A stretch of 61,497 bases of DNA, counting the filler, from Dimorphilus gyrociliatus (taxonomy: Eukaryota > Animalia > Annelida): the NCBI GenBank assembly GCA_904063045.1. It is 3 parts of 3 records of this genome, joined end to end, with 100 filler letters (N's around TTAATTAATTAA, not from the genome) between each part and the next. Parts side by side here need not be neighbours in the genome. Positions count along the whole stretch, not along the records: positions 1 to 18,829 come from CAJFCJ010000202.1; 2 more parts are not named here. The stretch is one strand, 5' to 3'. Each line of letters opens with the position of its first letter. Position 1 is the first letter of the stretch. Shown here in pieces: positions 1 through 18,502 of the stretch. Under the pieces are notes generated by a model. It was not told the DNA's origin, made no database searches, and saw only the letters and a list, made by a program, of their open reading frames with translations. The position numbers were made by a program, and so were the translations under genes.

Positions 1-3000
1 TATTGTTTGTAAAAAATCAAAAAGGAAAGGTATCTATAGTAAACTGGTATTGGAATTTTTTCTCCAATTTTGTTTATTTTCTTCAATCAGCTAATATTTG
101 CCTTGAAAGTAATTCATTTATGTTTGAAAATACTTGCTATAGACTTTTTGGTATTAAAGAAGCAAAAATTATAAATAATTTTGAAGCATTTTGTCAAAAA
201 AGAAATTTATCATTAATTGATTTTCCAACAAATAAAAACATATTTTTGACATTTTATTTACAAATGTTTGGTTTTTATGTTAGTAAAAAGACTTTAAAAA
301 ATTTTAAAGAAAGTTTACAAAATAAGATTGTCTTTTCTAGTAAGAAATTCAATTGATGATCTTTTTTTTTCTTTCTTTCTATCCTCTACTTCTTAATTTA
401 GAATTGAAACAGGCCTATTATAGAAAAAGATTAGTTACATTGACAACTAGCAACTATGATTATTCATTTATATCAAAAGTTGATAAATTTCTTTACAAAC
501 ATTATAAAATGTTTGAGCAATTTGGATGGTCAAACCGTTTTAAAAAGTTAATTACATATCCAATGACTGATGAATGTTTTACTTTGTCAGTTGCGTTAAG
601 AAGGTTAGCTACCAGTTTTTATAATTTGAAATTTTTTATTACTTATTGTCTTTTATATTTTTTAGTCAAGTGTCCGGCAATATATTTTTTAAAACTAGTC
701 CTTGCAAATACAGGACAAACGTTATTGTTTGTCAAAAGCAGTATAATTTAGGTTTTAAATAAAAATATGAATAGCAAAAAGAATTATAACAAAATTTAAT
801 TTTCAGGTGAAAATCATCTTCTTTCTTCATTTCCGGTTAAGAATGAAAATGTATCTTGTTCTACAAATTTCTATTATTGTAAAAATGATAAAATCTGTGT
901 TAATTATATATACATTTGTGATGGAGTATACGACTGTCCATCACGTGATGATGAATTAGATTGCGAAGATAAAGAACCTTTGAGATATCAGTGTTTAGAG
1001 AGTGGAGAAAGAATTAGTTATACTTTACTATGCGATTTTATTATAGATTGTTCAGATGGATCGGACGAAAAATTATGTGGTAAGATAATCTGTAAATCAG
1101 CTAATCTGCTAATCCATTAATCTGCTGATGAAAAATTTTAGCTCATAAACCTTGTAATGGCTCTAAATGCCACAATCAGCAATGTATATCTTCGACTATG
1201 GTCTGCGATAATGAAATAAACTGCTTTGATTCAAGCGATGAACTTTGCAGACATGAAGAAGCAATCGATGAAAATTATAAAAAAAGTTAGATTTCTTGAA
1301 CATCGTTAATTCAAACAATGTTTTTTTTTACATTTGTTCTAAATATAGATTGTAATGAGAATTATCAAATCGCTTGCGGTCAGCTATGCTTAACTCGAGA
1401 GAAATTATGCGATTTTCAAATTGATTGCGATAGTGCTAAAGATGAAAATGGATGTTCAAAAGTTTTACAGAATACAGAGAGATATCAGTCAACAATGTCT
1501 AATAAATGTTTACTTAAGTATGATACAAGTAATAATCTATTAACAAAGATCCGTTTTCCATTTTCATTGTTGAAAAATTGCCAAAAGCATAAATGTACAA
1601 AATCTCAATATAAGTGCTATTATTCTGGATTTTGCATTAATGTTGATAGAGTTTGCGACGGAATTAACAATTGTTTGAATAATGATGATGAATTATTTTG
1701 TGGTTTAAAATTTTTGAATGATTTAAATATACTTAACAAATAGTCTCTTTTTCTCCCAAATAGACAATTTTTTACTACCAGGTTTCTTTAAATGTAGAAA
1801 TCAAAATACTTTTCTATCCGAAGATCAAATCTGCAATGGAAAGTTGGATTGCCAACTAGGCAGTGATGAGATATTTTGCACATTTCCAAAGCAGATTTAT
1901 CAAGATATTTGTAAATATCCAAATTATTTTTCAATTGATTGCAAAAATGTAGAGAATAAGAATGGAAGAGAAATAATTGAAATAGATGAAAATTTCAAAT
2001 CAATCTCCTTGTATGGAAATTTTTTAAAAGATACTTTAAATGCTACTCAAAAATTTCAAAATGTTTTTATATTAAATATTTCCTATAACAATTTAATTGA
2101 TGAATGGAATAATGTTGAATTTTCAAATCTTATCTTTTTAAATATTGTTCATACAAATTCAAGTGAATTGAATTTTATTCAGAATTCAAAATTTTCAATG
2201 TTACAAACTCTAAATCTATCGAATAATCCTATTTATAGTGTTGATATAATGACTAAAACACCAATGAATAGTTTAATTATATTGGATTTATCAACAACAA
2301 AAATTGATAGAATTGACAGGAATTTGTTAAAAAATGTAAAAAATTTAAAATTATTTAAAATTGAAAGTTGTAATTTGAATGTAATTGAAAAACTATCGTT
2401 TGAATTCGTAAAAAATCTTGAATATTTATTAATGAAAAACACCAAATTTCCAACAAATTCCATAAAATATTTTATAAATTACATGAATAAATTAAAAATA
2501 ATTGAAAATGAACATTTTCAATTGTGTTGTCTAGCTTGGAAAGTTTTGGATAAACGGATTAAATGTAATCCTCATCCAACCCATTTTCTTACCTGTATGA
2601 ATATCATTCCATCAAAAATTTTAAGAGTACTTTTCTGGATAATTGGAATTATTGGTGTTCTTGGAAATTTAATAGTAATCTTTCTAACCTGCATTTCTAA
2701 GGTTAAATCAAAAACATTTGGATTTTGCCTAGTTTTAGGAGATTTATTAACTGGAGGTTACGTAATTTCAATCGCTGTAGCAGACAGCTATTTTTCGGGA
2801 ACGACTTATTTAGAAAATGAAGAAAATTGGAGATTTAGTAATAGTTGTTCAAGTTTGGGTACAATATTAACATTTTCATTGTTATTATCAATATTTTCAA
2901 TTCTATGTTTGGCAATTGAACGTTACGAAGCAATAAGCAATCCGTTAAAAAAGCCCCGTATCGTAATATACAGGAAATTAACATTAATCACTGGAATATC

Positions 3001-4151
3001 GCTCTCTCTCTTCATTTCAATGGTTCCTCTGATCTTCCATCAAGTTGACAATATAATTTTTTTTTCAAATAGTTAAAAAATTTTCAATTGCAGAATTTTT
3101 ATTCAAAATCGACAATTTGTTTCAACATTCAAATACGAAGTGATAAAAGTCAAGGTTGGATATTTTCATTTGTTGTATTTGGAATATTATTCTGTACAAT
3201 TAGTACTATTATTGCTGTATTATATATAAAATTAATTCTACAAGTAAAAAAAACTGCAATGATTAAATATAAATCATTATCAAAGAGTATTTATGTTTTA
3301 ACAATGTCAAATGTTTTATGTTGGTTTCCAATATCAATTATGTGTGAGTAGTGTCAATAATCCATATTAAATCAATCAGTTATAATCAACATTTCTTTAA
3401 TTTAGCAATTTTATCTCATATTTTAAATTTGGACCTAAAGAATGATATCTATATTATTGTTGTCATAGCAATAATTCCATCTAATTCATTACTAAATCCC
3501 TATATATTTGGAATAAATCAATGTATTTATTTATATAGAAATCATTTGTTAAAAACTGTCAAAAAAAAGTAAAAACAAATTATTTTTTCATTTACACAAA
3601 GTTTGTCAACTTTTTGTTTTTTATTTTTGTTCAGACAAATTTACTTAAGAACTGTTACAAATGCAATTACCAGAAAATGTTTGTACTTTCTCTCTCATTC
3701 TCTGTATCTCTTTGATCTAAAATCTTCATCTGCAGATGTGACTTTCTTCAACAAAGAAATAAAAATAATTTCTAATTGTATAAATTCTCAACAACCAATG
3801 AAAAAACTCTGTATACATCCAGAGTTTTTTAAAAAATTGAGATATTTCAAGTGTTCACAGCAACTTCTTAACTTTATTGCAAATTCTCACAAAAACTCTT
3901 TGAGTTTTGTCACTGAAAATTTTGAAAATATTATTTATTATTCTGTAAGTCAATTATTCATGATACCATATTTTCATATTATCATATGTTTTTTCCCTAC
4001 CTTGTAGGAACCAGACTATTATGTTGTATGTTATAATTTTGCTATTCAAACAGATGAAACAATGAGTAATGATGTATTGAAATTTGGAAATTTTGTTAGA
4101 AAAATCCTACAGAGAAGAAGAGCCTATCTTTCAAATATGGACACTGTTTAG
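1..4151 (+). CDS. GRL101/RXFP-like LDLa-LRR-7TM receptor, paralog 1 (5' partial, multi-exon), with CTL-like domain and kinase-like C-tail
   Basis: CTL-like start (ICLESNSFMFENTCYRLF) and end (FKTSPCKYRTNVIVCQK). Six LDLa repeats, e.g. CVNYIYICDGVYDCPSRDDELDC. LRRs (LQTLNLSNNPI, LIILDLSTTKI), hinge LCCLAWK...LTCMNII, 7TM with ERY and NPYIF. GT-AG introns keep the frame through exons 3635-3678, 3736-3944 and 4008-4151. Confidence 0.88.
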
Positions 4152-5530: not shown

Positions 5531-6211
5531 CATACCATAATATAAATAAATAAAAAAGTTTATGGACATAAAACGAAACATTTTGTCTTTTTGACATTTC
5601 AATTTTCACGCAATATATAGGCCAAAAGAATCACTTAATCCTATACTCTTTTTTAACCAATTTTCAGTGTCTCATATTGAAACAGTTACGGATTTTCAAT
5701 GTTTTCATACGCAAAACATAGCTGTTTTGATTAGTTATGGGAGTCAATCTAAAAATACATTTTAATCGTATAGAACATATGGATCAAAGGTAAAAATAAC
5801 AATATATTCAATATTGAAAATTTATATCCTGACAACTCCAAGTCTGATTATTCTCTCAATTAATGTTCATTATATTTGTTTGCACAATTTGATTCATGAG
5901 TCACATCAGCTATCCAACATTATTGATTCTTTCATTCTTTTTCTCTATTTTCTGATATATTGGAAAAAACAGAGAAACATACCAGCACTATTCATTGACC
6001 ATGTTAAATAAAATGAACAAAGACATTATCTATGTTTCGATTATTCTATCAATTTTCATTATATATATAAATATATATATATATTTATACTTAAGACGAT
6101 CATCTTTATAATTCAGTTCCCTTCCTACTCTCTTCGTCTCTTCTTCGTCTCTTCTTTTATCTTGCATTTCAGCTAGGAATCTTCTTGTTCTGAACAAAAT
6201 TCAACAAGATA

Positions 6212-6684
6212 ATGAGAAGATTAGAATTATGCTGTTGTATAATGAGTTTTTGGTGTACTGGGTACATTTGCAGCCAAATTGGCAAGTATTTCTGGATTTT
6301 ATTTGTTCATGAATGAGATAAAAGAAAGTTAAATGAGTAGTTTGAAATTATTTTTTGGCAGTTTGCCAGTATAGTTATGTAAGAACTACAAATTTGTTCG
6401 CAAAGTTCGATCGGATTCATGTAGATGAATGGGGCCACTACACCAAAGTCATGACAGTCGACCAGTGTAAAGAATATTGCAATAGCAACGATAAATGCCT
6501 GTTTGTATTGTTTGGTTTTGTGTGACAAATTCACCAAACTATTCAATTTCTCTTTCATCAACAGTTCATTCGATTATAAAAAGAATAAAGACGAATGTTA
6601 TCCGAATAACACCACTATGTCCACAGCCTCAAACCTTGTTTCAAGTAGCCAATTTGATTTCTACCTTAAAAATAAGCATTGCAG
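6212..6684 (+). CDS. secreted PAN/apple-domain protein (3' end uncertain, possibly a pseudogene)
   Basis: Exons 6212-6281 (MRRLELCCCIMSFWCTGYICSQI, signal-like), 6362-~6500 and ~6565-6684 splice to VCQYSYVRT...TVDQCKEYCNSNDKCLSFDYKKNKDECYPNNTTMSTASNLVSSSQFDFYLK, a PAN-type Cys pattern with CxSFDY...CY. The first intron needs a GC donor. Confidence 0.6.
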
Positions 6685-8182
6685 TAAATATTCGCTTTAG
6701 TTTTTTTTACACTCTATCATTATCATCATTATACCATTTCAAATTATTGGGTATATCTAAATAGGGAAAAAACTTTTCCTACAAGAAATAGAAGGTATAT
6801 TACTTCTTCAACTGACAAAATATTAGAAGCTAGCCTCATTGAAGAGAAGATGAATCTAGCGTTATTTTTCTAGCTCTTCATTACACCATCTTAAATATAA
6901 TTAAATTGGTAGAATTTCTCAGAACAAAAAAGTGTATAATATTTCTAGAAATAGAGTTTGCAGTTGAAATATTTATTATTACAGTCTAGACGCAATGTAA
7001 ATACAGATTAAAATTGATCTGCACATAATTCTTAATTCTTTACAACTGACAAAAGAAAATATCGTATTTTCCAATGTTTTATGGCCAAATAATAAAATGG
7101 CTGAATCTGCAAAATATAAATATATATATACATATATATAAATATGTAGTCAACGGACACATCGACTAGTCTTGGACACGTGCCAAGTTTATTTCTTATA
7201 AGACTTACATTACTATACAGTCAACATAATAAGTAATTAGTACAAAGAAAAAAGGTTTTATAAGGTGATTATTTGGTGTTATATAATTTTGATTTGCCTT
7301 ATCATCATATTAAGTCTGTACGTGAAGTCTTGGTTGAAAAACTTTAAAAGTTAGTTAGTTTGCTTCCTGTTTAGAGTTTGATTTTAGAAGGGCCTATTTT
7401 TCAACTCTTCCATTTCAACTTGTATTTGCATAAAACCTTTTTGACATCAGACAATGATATCTGTATAGGCACAGTACAGTTTTGTAAAATTTCTTGTGCT
7501 TTCTAGTTTGGTTTAAATCTTCATTTTATTGTAATCTAAAATTCCAAGGATCTAATATAATAAATTCTAGGATTCAAGAAAGATTTTCGGAATCGAACGC
7601 TTAGAATAGAGCAGAGAATCATGCAATGAAAACGGAGATGACGATACAAATGGGGCATATCATATTGATACTCATATCGGAAATTGCTTTTCTATGCTTA
7701 ACTATTTCTCTAAGTATAGGAAGGTATCAAAGAAAACTGGTAATAGCATTTGGTAAAAAGGTACTATACAATCGAAAGTAGCTCTAACTAGAAGTATAGA
7801 TATTAGAAATATCGCAGCGAGAAGAGGAAGTAGTATTATTTTTTTCACGATTAATAAAGTTGTACTATTATGATACAGTGATGTTATTAGACCCTTACGT
7901 GACACGTGACTTCTACAACAAAAATCAATTGTTAATATATTAAAGTGCTGTAAAAAGAAAATGTTCTATTAAAAACATCACTAATCCAAAATATAATCCG
8001 GTCATTCAACTATCTTTCCGTCCTCCCCTTTCTAATTGCTTTACGCCTATGTATAAGTATTCACTATCACTAAATCATTAGCTAATTAAAAATGATTAAG
8101 ATTAAAAAATTAATAATTATTTATGAATATAAAAACAAAATTAGAACATTTAAAGAATTGTCAGTCAGACATACAATTCAAA

Positions 8183-10634
8183 ATGAGAATATTTGAATTT
8201 TTGATAATTTTCAATAGTTTCTTATTCAGTAAAAAACTTTTGAATGCAGAAAAATTTTCAGGTAATGAAGTAATAAATTGTTCATTTCAAATATGTTCTG
8301 TCTTTTTGTTATACTAATCAACAGGTGGATATCTTATTGATGTTGCAAGTCAAAGTAACGGAGCAAGTTGTAACGCTTCCGGTGCTTTACCAGATTTTGA
8401 ATATTATACTTACCATTGTGAAAATGCATTGGAACCTTTCTGGAAAAATATTAATGGTTGGGTAACTCCATGTTCAAATTCATACTGTACCACCGAATGG
8501 ATTGATATTACCTTTAAACAACAATATCACGTGATAGAACTTTGTGTTTATCAAGGAATTGGTAATTTAGAGAGAAGAGTTGGAAAAATTTCCATAGTGA
8601 TGAACGCAAAAAGTACAATAATTCAACTAAACAATACCATCACGTGCTTTTTATTAGAAGAGCATTTTGGTTTGAACAGTTCAAGTTTAAAGATAAATAT
8701 TCACGAGATAAAGGTTGCAGCATCAAACATTGCTTTAGGCCAAATTTCAGCTTTTGCAATTGAATATGGTTAATAATTTCTTCTTTAGTTTTAGGTTTTT
8801 AAGCTTAATTTATTTATAGCCCCTATTTTATTAGCCTATGGATATATATACATATATTGTTATATAGGTGGTTCATTAAACGAATACGTTGAATACGATA
8901 ACATTGCTCAACTCGAATTTGGAGCCACTTGTAATCAATCATCCTACCAAACGGGAATGGATTGCTCTAACGCAATTGATTGGACTTTTTACCCAAATTG
9001 GATAGCCGACTGTTCAAATGTTCTATTATGCATTGATCAATACATCTCGATAAATTTTGCAATAGCTGCACGGCCAAAATACTTTTGTTTGGCGAATAGG
9101 TATAATCATAGGCCTATTTACTTAATTTTTTTATGACAAGGGTTAAATGAGGAAAAACTTAGTAAACAGATAGTAGACTTTGGGAATAGGTTAAAAGTTT
9201 TCCAAAGGTCAAGGGTCATTTGGAGGTGGAGGGGAGGGTTTGTATTTTATTTCTTTTAACTGTTTTCTTTTTTTTTATTCAAGAATGGGAGGTTCAAATT
9301 TTATAAAATTAATTGAAACGAAATGGTACTCTGGACATACTCAACTAATAAATTTACATGATAATGGCATTCGATATTGCTTTAATTATACAAATGAACC
9401 TAATATCGAATCTGGATTAACATTTACAATTAAAGATTTTTATACCGGAAGTAATCTAGGATTGAGAAGTGTTCATGTTTTTTCAAAAAGTATTCAAAAC
9501 ATTACTATTTTTTTTGTTCTATTATATTCTGTTTTTCTTTTAAAGGAACATTTGGACGAGTTTATTCTATTCAATCAGAAAATTACGTCATCTATTATGT
9601 AGCGGAAAAATTTCAAAAACAATTCAAATCATTAAAATTCAAAATTCTAGGCAAAGAAACGAATCAATCCAATGACTGCTCATCATTTATAATCAGTTTT
9701 AAAGATGAACTTTCTATACAATTTTCAATAAAAATTGATATAAAGGAAAACAGTACAAAAGACAATTTGATAATTGAATTATTTAAGCCTACTTTAATTG
9801 ACAAGATATTCAAGTTTCAAATGAAATTAATTAGTTGTGAATTTTGGACTGAATACTGGATTCAAATTTTAAATGGCGAATTACAATTTGGTTCCGGAAG
9901 AGCTTATGGTGTGAATATTTTAGCTAAAGTAACGGGAAACATTTCATTAAATTTAAAGGAAATTTTATTGAGAAACAACCAAGCTGACATCATAAATCAT
10001 TTTCAAATAACTGATATAGGTTTTTTAATTTAACCCTAACCCTAACCCTTTTTTAGCACAGCAATTCTTTCTAAACCAGATTCAATTCAATATTATTATC
10101 TAATCCCGACCCCCAACCTAATCCACTCTCTTTGCCCTTTACCCTATCCTAATGATATTATAATAATTTCTATTCTCCTCCTCTTTTTCTTCTACAGAGG
10201 GCCAAAAGATTTCTGTACCGCATATGAATCAATGCCAAATGACCCATTTCTATTCTACAATCGACAAATCATTTGACACCTGCTCAAGAATTCAAACTGA
10301 AATTTTAATAATTAATTTTGAATTTCTGAACAATAGAAATGATAATGGAATTGACAATTTTTTTATTATCGTTTCCTTTAAGAAGCTCCATGAAAATATT
10401 GAAAAGTTTCTAGTAAATGCTCTCATTCCCTACGAAAATGACGCGAATAACAGGATCATGTTGAAGTTATGCCAATTAAAAATTATAATTTATAAACCAG
10501 TATTCATATTTTATAAATTTAAATGCATTGTTAAAAATGTTCAAAATATTAAAATGAACAAATTTTTTATTCATATCAATGTCAACTCAAATGATTTGAA
10601 TAATATTTCAATTTGTGAAATTTTATTCAAATAA
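8183..10634 (+). CDS. secreted multi-domain protein: 2x discoidin/F5-8C-like, FAMeT (Methyltransf_FA)-like, C-terminal beta-sandwich
   Basis: Signal exon MRIFEFLIIFNSFLFSKKLLNA. Repeats DVASQSNGASCNASG...CENA...W...EWIDITF and NIAQLEFGATCNQSS...CSNAID...W. LISCEFWTEYWIQILNGELQFGSG is FAMeT-like. Ends in ISICEILF. In-frame GT-AG splicing was checked for most junctions. Confidence 0.7.
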
Positions 10635-10727: not shown

Positions 10728-13700
10728 TTAATTTTTATTAAATAAAACTTTTGTCATTAAAATTTTACGAGTAAAATTTCCAATTTTTAAAATATCATTT
10801 TTTTCATTCTTTAAATTCGTTTTGGTAAAATATTCATAAATAATATAATATTGTAAATTATTATCAACCTTTGAGTAATTTATAATATACCGGAAGTAAG
10901 TATAAATTGTTACTAAATATAGAAATTTTTATTTATACCTTAACATAGATGCAGTCTATGAACTCAATGCAAATTGGTGAAAGTCGATTAACGTGTGCAA
11001 TTGAAATACCTTTACATATTGCTTTAAGGCATTTAATATAATTGAAATTTTCATATAATAGGCCTATACGATAGTTTAATTTAGTTAATAATTGTCTATG
11101 TTCCAATCTTAGGAAGTATTTGGTATGTTCTTCATTAAAGAATGTTAAAACTGGTAGAAGGGAATGAATATTTTAATGAAATTTTAAAAAAAACTTGTAA
11201 TTATAAGATTTTACTTTCAGTAAAAATCAAATCTTTTGCACAATTAATAATTTTTTCTCTAAAGAAAAAAAAGAAAATTTTTGACCTTGACCTCTTTTGA
11301 AGTTGAAAAAAAAACTTAACTGTCTTTCTCTTTGTTTTTGTTTTCTTAATTGACAAATATGAATGAATTCCCGAGTTGAAAATATAAATGGATTTAAAAG
11401 ACAATTTAATGGAATAATAAAAATAAAAATGGCGACATAGTGATCATTTTTCAAATGAATATTCATAATTTCCGATAGGAAAGCTTTTAAAAAAAGGGAG
11501 AAAAAATATTTATAATATTCTCTTTCTCACACCAAAACATCTTACATAGAGTTGATATTGGAAACCAACATAACAGATTAGATATAATAATTAGATAAAT
11601 ACTCTTTGAAATTCTTTTCTTCCTATTTGTCTTTGACATAGAAATAGTGAAAAAAGATTGTTTAATCAACTTAATAATTTTAACATATAGAATTGAAATT
11701 ATTAAATTATTCATCAATAATATAATACCAAAAGTTGTAAATGAATATTGCCAACCATCCGATTTATCTGTTCTAATCGGTATGTTAAAACATATTGTTG
11801 ATTTTTTATAATATTTCTTAAAATAGAATAAAAAAGTTTTTTTTTTAAAAAACAAAAATGTTCAAGCTTTTTTTCTTTTTAATTTTTTTTTTACTTGAAA
11901 TATGATTAGAGGTAGAATTGAAAATGTTAAACAAGATATTAGTAGGGTAATCAGTGCCGTGTATCTATATTTTATCATAAACGGAAGTGTTAAAGGACTC
12001 GATATCGATTCGAAGCGTTCAATCGTTATGAACAGTAGCATAAATGTTGAAAATAGTAGTGAAAATGATAAGATTGTTCCTAAAATTGAGCAGAAAGTAC
12101 TCTCTCTCCAAGATTCTTCTTCGAAAATGTACCTTTCACCTGAAAAGTGTACATCTATTACGGCTGTTATCAATACGTACACTGCTGTTAGACAATCTCC
12201 AACGTTCAAGCTTAATCTATACAGTTTTGCAGCTGCCTTTGTCCTCATTATTAATACGAATGACGTAGCATTAGCTAAAATACCGCAAATTCCAAATATC
12301 CAAAAAATAATTTTTAAGAAATTATATGGAATAATATTATGACAAGTTACGAAAACTGGTAGTTTTGGTTTACAAGTGATTGTTTGTCTCAACATTTTCC
12401 AAGCCAGACAACACAATTGATAACTTCCACTTTCAATTTCACTTAAATTTATCATATTACTGATAATATCATTTAAATAGTTTACTGAAATATGAGTACT
12501 TGTAGCTATAAAATGATGTACATTTCTTAAAGAATTGAATGCATTTCGTTCAATAAAATTTAAAAAACATTTTTGAAACTTTAAAATTTTTAACGATTTA
12601 AAAAATTGAAAATTTTTCTTTTCTAAATTCTGAATTTTTGTTAATGAAAAATCTAATAATAAAATATTTCGAATTTCAAATTTATTCAAAATATTCAATG
12701 TCGTAAGGGGATTTTTTGAAATGTCTAAAAATTGTAGTAAAGACAACCTTGACCTTGAAATGAAATTCATATTTGTGATATTGTTATTCGAAAAATTGAT
12801 AAGAATAATATTTGGTATTGAAATACGATTATCTGAATTTGTAAGTAAAAAATTCTTATGAATATTTAAAATATGTAAATTAAGGTGTAATTTTGATATT
12901 TGAAATTTAAAATTTCCAACTAAAACGGCTTTTTTAACGGTTTCTTCAATTTGAAAATGAGTATTTTTTTGTCTAAAAGTACATTGAATTTCGTAAAGAG
13001 AAGTTTCATGAATACAAGAAAGATTATTATTATTGTTCTTGAATTGAGTTTTTAGAATTGAACAAAAAATTTCGTCACTTCCGTCTTGACAATCAACTTT
13101 GCTATTACATAACTGCTCGTTTGATAGGAATATCTTCTCAATTCTACACTTAAAAAACCCTTTTGGAACAGTGTGAAAATCTTCTATTTTGAGGGAAGTA
13201 TAAAAATTTTATTTTGCAGTTGTTTCCAGTTTTGTAACGGAAAATATATATATATATATATATACCGCAATTCATTTCATCATCTCCGTACAGGCACTGA
13301 TTTAAACCGTCACAGATAAGATTAATTGGAATGCAGTAGCCTTCGTAGTAACATTTATATTCAGATTTTGCGCATGTTTTATTTGCGCATGCGTACAATT
13401 CGGAAAATGGATATTGAATTTTTGTTAAAAAATTATTCATTGTATCATAGTTTATAGTACAGTAATTACTATTCAAATGGTTTTCATACCAGTTATTATT
13501 GTAATAGTTATTACAATGAGTTTCGTCCGTTTTGTCTTTGCAGTCGACATTAAAATCGCATCGTTTTTCGTTAGTTATACACATATCATTGCAGCTCCAT
13601 TGTGTTTTTTCATTGCAGTCTATAATTTTAAATGTACAGTAAATTGTAGAGTATTGTAGTTAGGGTTAACTTAACCCCAACGCCTAAATTGTTTTCCCTA

Positions 13701-16700
13701 CTGTCTTGGAATCTTTCGTCAATAGCATTGCCGTTCAGGCAAAGTTCGTCTGTGTAATCTATACAATTTCTTTCATTATCGCATACTTTATTTTCGGGTA
13801 TACATTGTTTATTAAGGCATTCTCTACTAATGGAAAAATAATAGGCTTTGAAATTTGATATGTAGAAAGGTAATTTCAATACCTGGAATTCAGGTTACAG
13901 TCTTCAAAAGCTTTAATTGATATATGAAAATATTATATTCTCTAACCCCTCTCCCTCTCTCTATCTCTTTCATCTCTAAATATGGGATTTAAGAGAAAAA
14001 AACATCCATAAAAATGACAATAATTAAATGAAGTATATCTTATCTAATCTGGATAGAAAAATGAATGTTTCCTTCTCAAAAATATCCCAAGTTATCTTTT
14101 ACTTACAGCAATAAATTTCGTCAGAATGATCTTGGCAGTCAGGAAAATGATCACAAATTAAGGAATAGCTAATTCTTTCCTTTGAAGTTAGACATTCAAA
14201 CATTTCTCTTTTATGAAGTTTATTATCGTAGGATTTGTCGACTGTACCGCAATTTATTTCGTCATCACCAGATTTACAGTCGAATATTCCATCGCATAGA
14301 TAAACGGAATTAATACAATAACCGTCTTGTTTACATTCGAAGTCTCTTTTTGAACAGTTAATATTTTGAATGGGAAGATAAAGTGAAGAGTATTTACTGA
14401 TGGATTGAATTTTCTTTTCTATAGATTGAGAGAAGAAAGAGTGAAAAAGAATGAGAGAGAGAGAGAGAAAACAACCTAAAAGTCTTTGACATATAAACAC
14501 ACTACTCTTCCTCTTACAAGATATAATTTCAACATAAATATGAATTATTCTAGAAAAATATTTAAATTTAAATAAGAAATTACGTTAGTTTGTCAAATTT
14601 AAATTAATACGGTTTTCTTTTTACGTAAGTTAAAAAACAATCATTTTCAACCTTGTTCGGTAATATTTGTAAAAATTCAGATTTGTCTAATAAAATATCA
14701 ATAATAGATTCTTCATAAATATATCGAGAAGGTGATAAGAAATGCTCCGCAAAAGGAATAAATTCTCTATTCTGATTGCCAGTGGTTACTGATATTTTTC
14801 TATTTTTATACTTTTTCTCAATAAATCCTTTATAAAAAACAACCATGATAGAAAACAGCCATTTTGTTGGTGTTTGTTTTGTTTTTAAGCATTTTCTATT
14901 TTTACTAGTTCAAATATATTATATTTACTGGAAAAGACGTTGAATCGATATCTTTTTCCTTGATTAATTTCACCAGTCATTAATTGTAGATATTCAACTA
15001 TAAAATGTTTTTTAAATGTTGAAAATGCTAATGACGTCATATTATTCATTCTGCAAATATCTTCTTGTTGCCAAATTTCTCTTTGTTGTTTAACAGTGAA
15101 AATCTTATAACATAAATTTTCAAAATTAATCATATTTTCACCAATACAATCAAGCTTTTCACTAGTTTTATAACATTTTATTGTTAATTTTCCAAATGTA
15201 CTCAAAATATTTCTGTACGTAAAATAATTTCAAATTTTTAAAAAACAAACATTTCAAATTTTTTTTTTGACAGACTTTCTATTAATTTGACAATTGAGAA
15301 CATTTGTTTCGCCGTTTGAACAGTTCAAGTTGGATATAAATGTATAATAATAGTTAAATCTTACTTTTGGATCATAGATAAATGTTAAACGTTTCGAAAT
15401 GAATATTTCACCAGTTGTAAAACCGAAATATTTACATAATAGAGTAATGTCAATTGAATCGAAAGTTCGAATTAGATAATGAATTTTTTGTAATACAACT
15501 CTAACATATCCAATATAAAATGTATAGTTATGACTCTGACCGTAAAGTAGATTTTGGTGTGTATTTATCAAATAGAATTTTGATTCTGATTGTCACGTGA
15601 CCGATTATAACCAATTCCTACAGTTTGTAAATATACTTACCTGGCATGTAGCTGTAATCAACGCAGGTAGGTTTGTAATAATTATAAAATTCTTTATCAT
15701 TACGAGTTGTATTAATCAATTGGAGATAGCATCCAAAAAATACATCATTTTCTCTAGATGAACATCCTCTTAGAGCTATTGGCATAATCTGAGGAAGAGA
15801 AGTAAAAAAGGGAAAATAATTATCACCAGATGGAATCTATGATTTTGAAAAATATACCTTTCTTGTTGAAAATTGCTGTTTAACTTGAACTTTTGGTCCA
15901 ATTGTTTTACCAAGATATTTTTGACAAAAAAAGAAATTTGCATATGTATATGGTATGGTTCTATGAAACACCAATTGTCTATAACCGTATAATTTTGAAT
16001 GAATTAAAAACTCAAGCCTAAAGAACGTGTATGTTAAATCGCGAGAAGAATATTCCTTTTTAGTTTTTATTTTTACTTCTGAATGATGATTGGACAATAT
16101 AAATTTATACTTGAAATTCAAAATTAGAAACGGACCGTCTATTTCAAAATAGGAGCATATTATAATTTTGGTGAAATTTCTCCATTGTTGAGTAGTGTCA
16201 TTTAACGTAACGAAACCGTTTTTGTTTAATTTTAAGTATTTATTCGAATATCTATTTAATTTTAATTTAAAATTAATAGCTAATTCGTTCTTTCTACACA
16301 ACGTTTTCCTTTCTTCTTCCATTGAAAATGTTTTAAACAATTGGTTATTTTCGTATAAAATTAACAAATAGGTTGATGGTTTCATTTTCATTGCTAAGAA
16401 AACTAATAAATGATGTACTTTAAAGTAATGACAGTATTATTTGAAAATATTATAAACTCTTACAGGTTGAATCATTTTTAAAACATTTTAAAAAAACACC
16501 AATCGATGTCACATGACCAGTTTTCCTGCTGAAGAAACAGAAATAAAATTTAAGGACAATAGGAGAAAGTAATCAATGAAATTGGTGTTTTTCATATTAC
16601 ACTTACAATTGGCAACAAGGAAATTTGCTGAGTAGTCTCAATGAAAGATTTTTAGAATTAATGCTCAAATATTCAATATGTGAAAAATTTGAATAATTAA

Positions 16701-16926
16701 TTAATAATCTCTTGCAAAAGAAAGATTTTAAATATTCAAATTTAACAGTTAATGTTTTACTAAAGAATAATCTTTGGTAGACTGTTCCATTAAAAATTCC
16801 ATGAATAGAATATTTTTTTAAAATATTATTATCATTTATGATTTTAAAATTTAAATTATTGAAATTGTTGATTAAACAATTGTTGAAATAAGGTAAGAAT
16901 AGAATAAAGATGATTTTCAACACCAT
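10728..16926 (-). CDS. GRL101/RXFP-like receptor, paralog 2: SP, SRCR-like, CTL-like, 6x LDLa, LRR, 7TM, kinase-like tail
   Basis: Signal MVLKIIFILFLPYFNNC. SRCR-like LLCKYFGFTTG...LNCSNGETNVLNCQ. CTL-like CIGENMINFENLCYKIF. Six LDLa, LRRs, hinge LCCLAWK, ERF and NPFIF. Tail exons 11258-11215, 11150-10939 and 10868-10728. Confidence 0.85.
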
Positions 16927-17485
16927 TTTCAAAAGTAAAACTAACTGATATTTTATTTCGAGTTGACATTAAGTGATTAATTTGAGAGAAAAAAAAGGAA
17001 TGCGTTACCTAATTACGCAATATAGAGTTATAAATAGCTCATTTAAAGGGAAATGAAATATTGTGTTGTTAAATACACCCAAGATTGGATAAATCATGTT
17101 TGAAGAAAAAATTCTACATTATTTTGTTCAGATTTTTCATATGTTATTTCAGTTTTGTGGTTGTACCCCGACCCAACTCTAGACCTTGTTTTAAACACTT
17201 CATTGTTCCTAACCCTAATTACAAATGTTTCAAACATTGATATTTTAAAGAGGCTGTATTAAATACAAAGCTAAATCTATGTTAAAGTTACAACAATACC
17301 ATAATTTAATGTGTATTACATCAGTGTTATATTTAGATTTAAAATATATAGCAGTGTTTGAATAACAATAAAGGTATATGATAAAGCCATTTCTCCAGTG
17401 ATATACCTCTGAATAGAGAAAAAAAAACACAACAATTTGTAACCATAGACAACAAGACTATTTAGATATTTGTACAATAACTGTA

Positions 17486-18502
17486 TTATGTAACAGTAGA
17501 GTGATAGCTAACAATGCTATTTTTATTAAAAAGATGTCTAAATGTTAAAAAATTGATGACAGTAAGAATTTGGTTTCTAAAAGAAGGAAAGATAGAGATG
17601 TAAATTACAGTGTTAAAAAAGCTATTGAAATTTGCTAGCCAAGTTAGAAAATATCTTTGAGTTTGTGTTTTTTGTTTAAAATTCTTACTAAACAAACTAC
17701 CAACAGCTAAAATACTATAAGGCATCCATAATGTATAAAATACTATAATTGATAAAATTAATAGTTTAAATATCCTCAAATTTCTTTTTGAAAGTGTTTT
17801 TATTGCCTGATTCATTGGACTTATTCTGGATTTTTTACTTTTCAAAAAGGTTATAATCTTTAATCCAGAAAATAGTAGAATTGCAGATGTTAAAAATGGT
17901 CCAGCAAAGAGGTAACAGCTTGTATTAAAACTAATCTTATAATCTGGAGCGCATATAATCTCAGATACCAAAAAGCTGTAATCTTCCAATTCAAATATCT
18001 TTAACTCAGGTAAACAGCTAAAAGTATACAGGAAAATCCATAAAAGTATCAGTATGATGAGAATCTTCCTTTGTGTCATGATAGTTGTATACCTGAAGTA
18101 AACATGAAATATAAAATTAAGCCTATAAATGCATTTAGAAAACACATGCTTATCATAATAATTTACAGCTAAATATCTATCAAAAGCTATTATTGCAATT
18201 GTCCAAAGAGACAGCATACCACTTGTTGTTAGAATTATACCAGAAATTTGACAAACTACATATCCATATTGATATTTACCGGAAACTGATGATGTAAATG
18301 ACACCATTAATGATACAACACTTATTTTAAAATCAGCAATAGATGTATTTATTAAGAGAATTTTTGTCATTTTTGGTATTTTTTTAACAATTGGTAAAGT
18401 TAATAGAGCAGCTATTGTTGAGAAAAATGATAGAAATACAGGAATTCCAACTATAATACTCCTTAAAGGATTTGAAATTGGATGTTCCAATGCAGAATTC
18501 AT
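17486..18502 (-). CDS. orphan class A (rhodopsin-like) GPCR, not an opsin
   Basis: Seven hydrophobic helices, TM2 SIADF, TM3 Cys and DRY, ECL2 Cys, TM6 WMPY, TM7 NSFFNTVIY. Asn sits at the opsin Lys296-equivalent position. Probable in-frame ~57-nt intron after DRYLAVNYYDK. Confidence 0.85.
   Translation of the reverse strand: MNSALEHPISNPLRSIIVGIPVFLSFFSTIAALLTLPIVKKIPKMTKILLINTSIADFKISVVSLMVSFTSSVSGKYQYGYVVCQISGIILTTSGMLSLWTIAIIAFDRYLAVNYYDKHVFSKCIYRLNFIFHVYFRYTTIMTQRKILIILILLWIFLYTFSCLPELKIFELEDYSFLVSEIICAPDYKISFNTSCYLFAGPFLTSAILLFSGLKIITFLKSKKSRISPMNQAIKTLSKRNLRIFKLLILSIIVFYTLWMPYSILAVGSLFSKNFKQKTQTQRYFLTWLANFNSFFNTVIYISIFPSFRNQILTVINFLTFRHLFNKNSIVSYHSTVT

Follow-up and report, generated by a model that had tools for sequence, protein, structure and literature searches.

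In the analyzed 61,497-nt stretch of Dimorphilus gyrociliatus DNA (assembly GCA_904063045.1; hereafter the window), a gene for a receptor coupled to G proteins (GPCR), referred to as paralog 1, is predicted to continue past an apparent stop codon behind its seventh transmembrane helix (TM7) through three small, unannotated exons. The evidence supports the view that the cytoplasmic tail encoded by these exons is selected coding sequence of protein-kinase origin, and we assign a probability of about 0.7 to the reading that it folds into a core without catalytic activity, anchored behind helix 8 and serving as a docking or regulatory surface. Paralog 1 itself is an intact GRL101-like (type C2 LGR) receptor, comprising lectin-like and LDLa repeats, leucine-rich repeats (LRRs), a rhodopsin-class seven-transmembrane (7TM) region, and the tail exons.

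Tail Exons of Paralog 1 and Their Recurrence in Other Copies

The TM7 exon stops two bases into a codon at a phase-2 donor (AA/GTAAAA, with the GT at 3569), and the unspliced sequence reads KKK followed by TAA. As claimed in the original prediction, this stop lies within a GT-AG intron (3569–3634), and the postulated in-frame continuation through exons of 44 nt (phases 2/1), 209 nt, and 144 nt, adding about 130 aa, was reproduced in coordinates, phases, and open frames (Table 1). All three tail introns (66, 57, and 63 nt) are of the GT-AG type, and each exon, translated alone, reads without a stop in the frame dictated by the preceding phase, which adds ~131 aa past KKK. The 209-nt exon has seven and five stops in its two other frames. 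Nucleotide shuffling revealed open-frame chances of 0.26, 0.0025, and 0.0105 for the three exons, or jointly ~7e-6. From these sequence features we infer that the tail exons are spliced into the main mRNA.

We read 11 copies of the tail, i.e., two in the window, five in L001–L009, two in L013, and two in L014. The phase-2 donor is present in all of them, 74 nt past the start of the TM7 NP codon (62 nt in one copy), and the micro-exon measures 44 nt in 10 of the 11, with 14 codons in the remaining, fused copy. Tail exon 2 ranges from 206 to 215 nt and is open in the expected frame only, with 2–12 stops per other frame. Shuffling of seven copies gave a joint open-frame chance of ~1e-31, an overstatement, since the copies are related to one another and exon choice was made by eye. 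The strongest evidence comes from the minus-strand copy in L014 (~3134–3533), which lacks the last two introns and whose tail is one open reading frame (ORF) of 14 + 1 + 69 + 48 codons, equal to the splice model in order, lengths, and frame. That recurrence marks selected coding sequence, as had been argued before, is thus supported by nine further copies outside the window with the same phases. The same argument had counted two other paralogs with identical exon sizes and phases; a search for a third LDLa-LRR paralog in this piece found none besides paralog 2 on the minus strand, which shares the phases but has exons of 44, 212, and 141 nt, two of which differ by one codon. Both Dimorphilus copies in L013 carry the tail, and their annotation ends at TM4 or earlier.

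It is conceivable that the first tail intron separates two isoforms, a tailless one after retention and a tailed one after splicing, and that their ratio acts as a switch. In the window, L002, and L005, retention would lead to a stop no more than one codon on; the other copies would gain a short tail. However, a phase-2 GTAA donor automatically yields an in-frame TAA, neither AATAAA nor ATTAAA as poly(A) hexamer was found in intron 3569–3634, and the stop position varies among copies, which makes such a switch improbable.

Regarding further features of these loci, L013 (6001–11200, Dimorphilus gyrociliatus) holds two convergent GRL101-like paralogs with stops ~100 nt apart; in the annotation, one of them (DgyrCDS9719) is cut at TM4 and the other is reduced to an LDLa fragment. 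A tail-to-tail pair of paralogs is likewise present in L014, and L005 shows an apparent read-through at the third intron position (8135–8265).

Kinase Origin of the Tail

The tail exons were searched singly, with database proteins and the natural single-ORF copy of L014 (3137–3532, minus strand) as stand-ins. Profiles of the exon-2 family matched kinases only, at the alphaE/catalytic loop region, and every PDB match was a kinase, with weak E-values of 0.011–1.1. The tail exon of L002 matched Pkinase (E 0.027). Exon 2 of the window family is linked to tails of database proteins with an E-value of 1.8e-4, the window terminal exon matched the database-tail profile with a shuffle p of 0.0005 (family-profile link E 3.6e-4), and the single-ORF copy aligned with the database tails from alphaE to alphaF (E 8.8e-5). 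Two separate exons match the two halves of one database-tail profile, and their order is the correct one (combined p 8e-5 and 2.6e-5). The tails of annotated GRL101-like receptors are kinase-like (Pfam E 3e-6 to 0.09; PDB profile E 8.5e-6), with which their predicted structure agrees, including JAK pseudokinases among the fold matches. A core of alphaE, catalytic loop, beta7, beta8, and alphaF is predicted structurally for the homologous scallop tail and is carried to the window family by the profile links. The alignment of the single-ORF copy with the database tails also agrees with the initial placement of alphaE, catalytic loop, beta8, and a DVWSFG-like motif. Furthermore, the genes of scallop and nemertean have two tail introns in common, one in phase 1 and one in phase 0 where beta7 ends, phases that match those of the annelid tail. 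The matches spread over CAMK, CLK, VRK, and TK, and a kinase subfamily is not assignable.

Several results weigh against a kinase origin. The window tail exons alone had no kinase match in Pfam, and window exon 2 alone reached a shuffle p of only 0.19 against the database-tail profile. For the 209-nt exon alone, AlphaFold returned a predicted local distance difference test (pLDDT) score of 50.5 and no fold match, and ESM Atlas gave no confident model. The terminal-exon profile retrieved no kinases from the PDB, only chance ferritin matches; hhalign probabilities for the tail links were 37–60%; and the phase-0 intron of the window lies 3–4 codons off the scallop position. Tail pieces of Dimorphilus and L014 were likewise without a Pfam match, as was the single-ORF L014 copy in a phmmer search of the PDB. 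We attribute the missing kinase likeness of the window exons alone to their divergence. The anticipated similarity in profile or structure searches therefore holds for exon profiles and homologous tails, not for the window exons taken alone.

These weak values, together with the long branch of the window receptors, could also mean that the annelid tail is coding but not of kinase origin, or that it stems from an independent fusion unrelated to the scallop, nemertean, and tick tails, the likeness being a chance match of helices and strands. We give this a slim chance, considering the ordered match of two exons to the two profile halves, the same receptor type and place of attachment, the matching intron phases, the PDB matches of exon 2, all of them kinases, and the clade test for short-tailed receptors described below.

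Loss of Catalysis and Reduced Fold

The HRD motif is missing in all 15 tails tabulated; in the window, its position is taken by FVT or VTE, with a register uncertain by one residue. The window tail also lacks DFG, the glycine loop, the beta3 lysine, and most of the N-terminal lobe, and leaves no room for an N-terminal lobe or an activation segment; beta8 and alphaF are only ~10 residues apart. Of the alphaF motif, D and G survive for the most part. The hallmarks of an active protein kinase are all absent, from the glycine loop and beta3 Lys to the Asp residues of HRD and DFG and the activation segment, and the tail is not a canonical two-lobed pseudokinase either, since alphaG–alphaI are missing along with most of the N-terminal lobe. 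Only ~100 residues align to kinases (target TM-score ~0.25 in structure comparison). Residual enzymatic or nucleotide-binding activity, as in an atypical kinase, is very unlikely. In one register, the catalytic-loop positions of L002 still hold D, K, and N, and hemichordate versions keep much of both lobes; yet the window copy has lost the elements listed above, and a ~130-aa fragment of the kinase fold is too small to form an ATP cleft.

Distribution and History

C-terminal kinase matches on lophotrochozoan GRL101-like proteins, for which a search had been suggested, were found in scallop and nemerteans, and also in tick and hemichordates, so that the tail spans Lophotrochozoa, a tick, and hemichordates, or at least five bilaterian phyla. 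Annotated but undescribed proteins of this kind comprise Mizuhopecten OWF45852, Tubulanus XP_074645996, Lineus XP_064641999, and Dermacentor XP_054927509, as well as Ptychodera XP_070532232, XP_070573185, and XP_070533608 and the GRL101-like proteins of Glandiceps and Saccoglossus. Only three hemichordate proteins retain a near-complete pseudokinase with much of both lobes, two of them with automated Pkinase matches.

We calculated a tree from the hinge–TM4 region (one exon, ~180 columns, quick method). The window receptors form a separate long-branch clade with Dimorphilus DgyrCDS9719; they are GRL101-like, and not orthologs of the single-copy GRL101 clade (Antedon, Owenia, and hemichordate). 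A single clade of all tailed receptors was rejected by the approximately unbiased test (p-AU 0.006), because the three near-complete hemichordate pseudokinases sit among tailless true GRL101 orthologs. A single clade of short-tailed receptors was not rejected (p-AU 0.27; the group was picked after the first tree, and two long rows were omitted). Either an ancestral fusion was therefore lost many times, or at least two fusions occurred, and judging from the tree, the near-complete hemichordate pseudokinases may represent a separate event. Tail state requires seven changes on the tree. Many GRL101-like receptors are without such a tail, calls that rest on annotation, which can miss a tail, as in Dimorphilus. 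Within the true GRL101 orthologs, those from three acorn worms (P0099, P0160, and P0161) have a near-complete pseudokinase at their end, and the crinoid and annelid orthologs do not.

Proposed Role of the Tail

In our proposed mechanism, the three spliced exons would encode a minimal kinase core composed of alphaD, alphaE, a dead catalytic loop, a beta7–beta8 hairpin, and alphaF. This core would fold beside helix 8 and act without catalysis, by partner binding, receptor pairing, or control of G-protein or arrestin access. The role is proposed by analogy with pseudokinases bound to receptors, such as the kinase-homology domain of receptor guanylyl cyclases, and with JAK JH2, compared with which the core is much more strongly reduced. 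It probably stems from a kinase that was fused long ago to a GRL101-like receptor, a fusion then kept through lineage-specific receptor expansion in small annelids.

The tail could instead be spliced and kinase-derived, yet be a decaying relic for folding or trafficking, which any stable cytoplasmic domain might serve, with no specific signaling role. Identity among exon-2 copies is only 15–28% (copies overall 15–35%, saturated), the L009 copy has an early stop in its last tail exon, which means that the tail can decay, and the many tailless GRL101-like receptors and the changes of tail state on the tree point in the same direction. On the other hand, the 11 copies agree in their segment lengths, in His51, and in the alphaF motif, an agreement that extends across phyla, and the last helix is closely similar between window and Dimorphilus copies; we therefore rate a mere relic as unlikely. 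Conservation is strongest at the alphaE His and alphaF, as expected of a structural core, and a non-catalytic docking or regulatory core remains our preferred reading. More tentatively, and with rather less confidence than in this role, the tailed receptors could constitute an old and overlooked bilaterian class of GPCR–pseudokinase fusions, a one-lobe signaling module shared by annelids, molluscs, nemerteans, chelicerates, and hemichordates that offers an output or control route independent of the usual G-protein switch; the window subclade has, in addition, lost the Tyr of TM7.

Comparison with Known Systems

GRL101 is an orphan receptor that has been proposed to bind insulin-like growth factor (IGF)/insulin-like peptides (PMC8286064) or to be chemosensory (PMC6267866); the cytoplasmic tail of GRL101/LGR receptors was left unconsidered for its poor conservation (PMC4079206). 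The window receptors share several LDLa domains, LRRs, a hinge, and 7tm_1 with GRL101/type C2 LGRs (Lymnaea GRL101, arthropod LGR5), but differ by additional lectin/SRCR-like exons, the kinase-derived tail, NPxxF, and a diverged clade of their own. GPCR–kinase fusions (GPCR-TKL, GPCR-TKL/K, and GPCR-TK) are known from oomycetes and amoebozoa (PMC5784254) and from choanoflagellates and sponges; a 2025 survey reports GPCR-TKs from no other metazoans and none as characterized (PMC12716839). A kinome survey lists, for sea urchins and cats, a few transmembrane kinases of GPCR type that group within the tyrosine kinases, with the receptors unnamed (PMC10463195). Like these fusions, the window receptors carry a kinase-derived domain on the cytoplasmic C-terminus of a 7TM receptor. 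GPCR-TKL, GPCR-TKL/K, and GPCR-TK, however, have recognizable full kinases on other 7TM types, whereas the window 7TM belongs to the LGR/rhodopsin class, which excludes it from the GPCR-TKL/K and GPCR-TK groups, and the bilaterian LDLa-LRR receptor bears a dead core of ~100–130 aa. Annotated tailed GRL101-like proteins have the same architecture, and their short type shares the alphaD–alphaF extent and a similar intron pattern with the window tail; their tails differ in being less eroded and included in gene models. Non-catalytic kinase folds next to the membrane also occur on receptors in the kinase-homology domain of receptor guanylyl cyclases, JAK JH2, and ROR/RYK/PTK7. These domains have both lobes in full and belong to single-pass receptors or to kinases of the cytosol, in contrast to the one-lobe fragment on a 7TM receptor.

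In a literature search that missed most subscription journals, no account of GRL101/LGR receptors with a kinase tail turned up. The suggestion that a class A LDLa-LRR receptor with a pseudokinase remnant is undescribed thus holds for this family and not for GPCR–kinase fusions in general: the design is known from elsewhere and was not found described for GRL101-like receptors or in truncated form. A 7TM–kinase design held to be a feature of protists, choanoflagellates, and sponges appears on GRL101-like relatives of relaxin receptors, where erosion of the kinase, its reduction to a single lobe, and its frequent omission from gene models kept it hidden. The graded series from the near-complete acorn-worm pseudokinase to the annelid 130-aa core lets one ask what function is left to a kinase remnant of the smallest stable size, and the tail offers a concrete handle on the signaling of an orphan family proposed to bind IGF-like peptides.

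Receptor Layout and Neighboring Genes

The start of the paralog 1 gene is cut off by the window edge; the remaining upstream exons are all open with matching phases (Table 1). At least five LDLa matches on four exons, and LRRs and a hinge ahead of the rhodopsin-class 7TM, identify it as GRL101-like/type C2 LGR. GRL101-like proteins are the nearest named matches of the window receptors, the best database protein match being 44%, and relatives of the large exon were restricted to unannotated genomic contigs and one Dimorphilus gyrociliatus gene. A Pfam search of exon 91–339 gave no match.

Table 1. Receptor features in the window (ECL2, extracellular loop 2).
Feature	Position	Strand	Details
Paralog 1, exon with C-type-lectin-like cysteine pattern	91..339	+	AG/GT bounds, open frame; lectin likeness by eye and by match to paralog 2 exon 14885-15205
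Paralog 1, second exon	402..589	+	AG/GT bounds, open frame; counterpart is paralog 2 exon near 14604-14846
Paralog 1, three LDLa exons (807-1079, 1142-1285, 1349-1702)	807..1702	+	All phase 1; Ldl_recept_a E 6e-13, 1e-6, 6e-7
Paralog 1, large exon (last LDLa, LRRs, hinge, TM1-TM4)	1764..3043	+	7tm_1 E 1.4e-10, LRR_8 E 7e-6, LDLa E 4e-4; ERY intact
Paralog 1, ECL2-TM5-TM6 exon with CWFP	3094..3343	+	Phase-1 donor; 7tm_1 E 0.009
Paralog 1, TM7 and helix 8 exon with NPYIF	3406..3568	+	Phase-2 donor 74 nt past NP codon start
Paralog 1, intron with apparent stop	3569..3634	+	66 nt, GT-AG; retention would give a tailless receptor
Paralog 1, micro-exon (tail linker)	3635..3678	+	44 nt, 14 codons, phases 2/1; no kinase element assigned
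Paralog 1, tail exon 2	3736..3944	+	209 nt, phases 1/0; possible alphaC vestige, alphaD, alphaE with invariant His51, degenerate catalytic loop, beta7
Paralog 1, terminal tail exon	4008..4151	+	144 nt including stop; beta8, short link replacing activation segment, alphaF (D and G of DxxxxG kept)
Paralog 2, terminal tail exon	10728..10868	-	141 nt; within-window tblastn E 1e-6
Paralog 2, tail exon 2	10939..11150	-	212 nt; within-window tblastn E 4e-4
Paralog 2, micro-exon	11215..11258	-	44 nt
Paralog 2, LDLa-LRR-7TM body	11321..14422	-	Several exons, outer bounds approximate; 7tm_1 E 1e-6; LDLa E 1.5e-13, 4.5e-13
Paralog 2, probable N-terminal exons (signal-peptide-like start, SRCR-like, lectin-like)	14604..16932	-	SRCR E 0.034, lectin-fold A33R E 0.002; bounds approximate, joining inferred

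In the window receptors, ERY and CWxP are present and NPxxY is changed to NPxxF, as read from the sequence. At the Tyr position of the NPxxY motif in TM7 (3495–3509 and homologous loci), the two window paralogs and L001, L002, L005, L008, and L009 carry F, L, or N; the Tyr is retained in the Dimorphilus plus-strand copy of L013, in the two copies of L014, and in the tailed receptors from databases. Its loss in the window subclade may alter G-protein activation.

The lectin-like, SRCR-like, and unassigned exons at 14604–16932 (minus strand) are probably the N-terminal part of paralog 2, reaching up to a signal peptide and giving a long, immune-receptor-like ectodomain; the nemertean tailed receptor contains CUB and lectin domains. 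A frameshift was suspected in the last exon of paralog 2, and closer reading revealed none. The window further contains a multi-exon gene with discoidin/F5-8 type C-like exons (8182–10634), and as an F5_F8_type_C gene directly follows the receptor in L002, the neighborhood is possibly conserved. Other neighbors are a single-ORF rhodopsin-class GPCR that is not an LGR (17486–18502, minus strand; 7tm_1 E 2e-25; perhaps with a small in-frame intron) and short plus-strand ORFs with a PAN/apple-like cysteine pattern (6150–6760).
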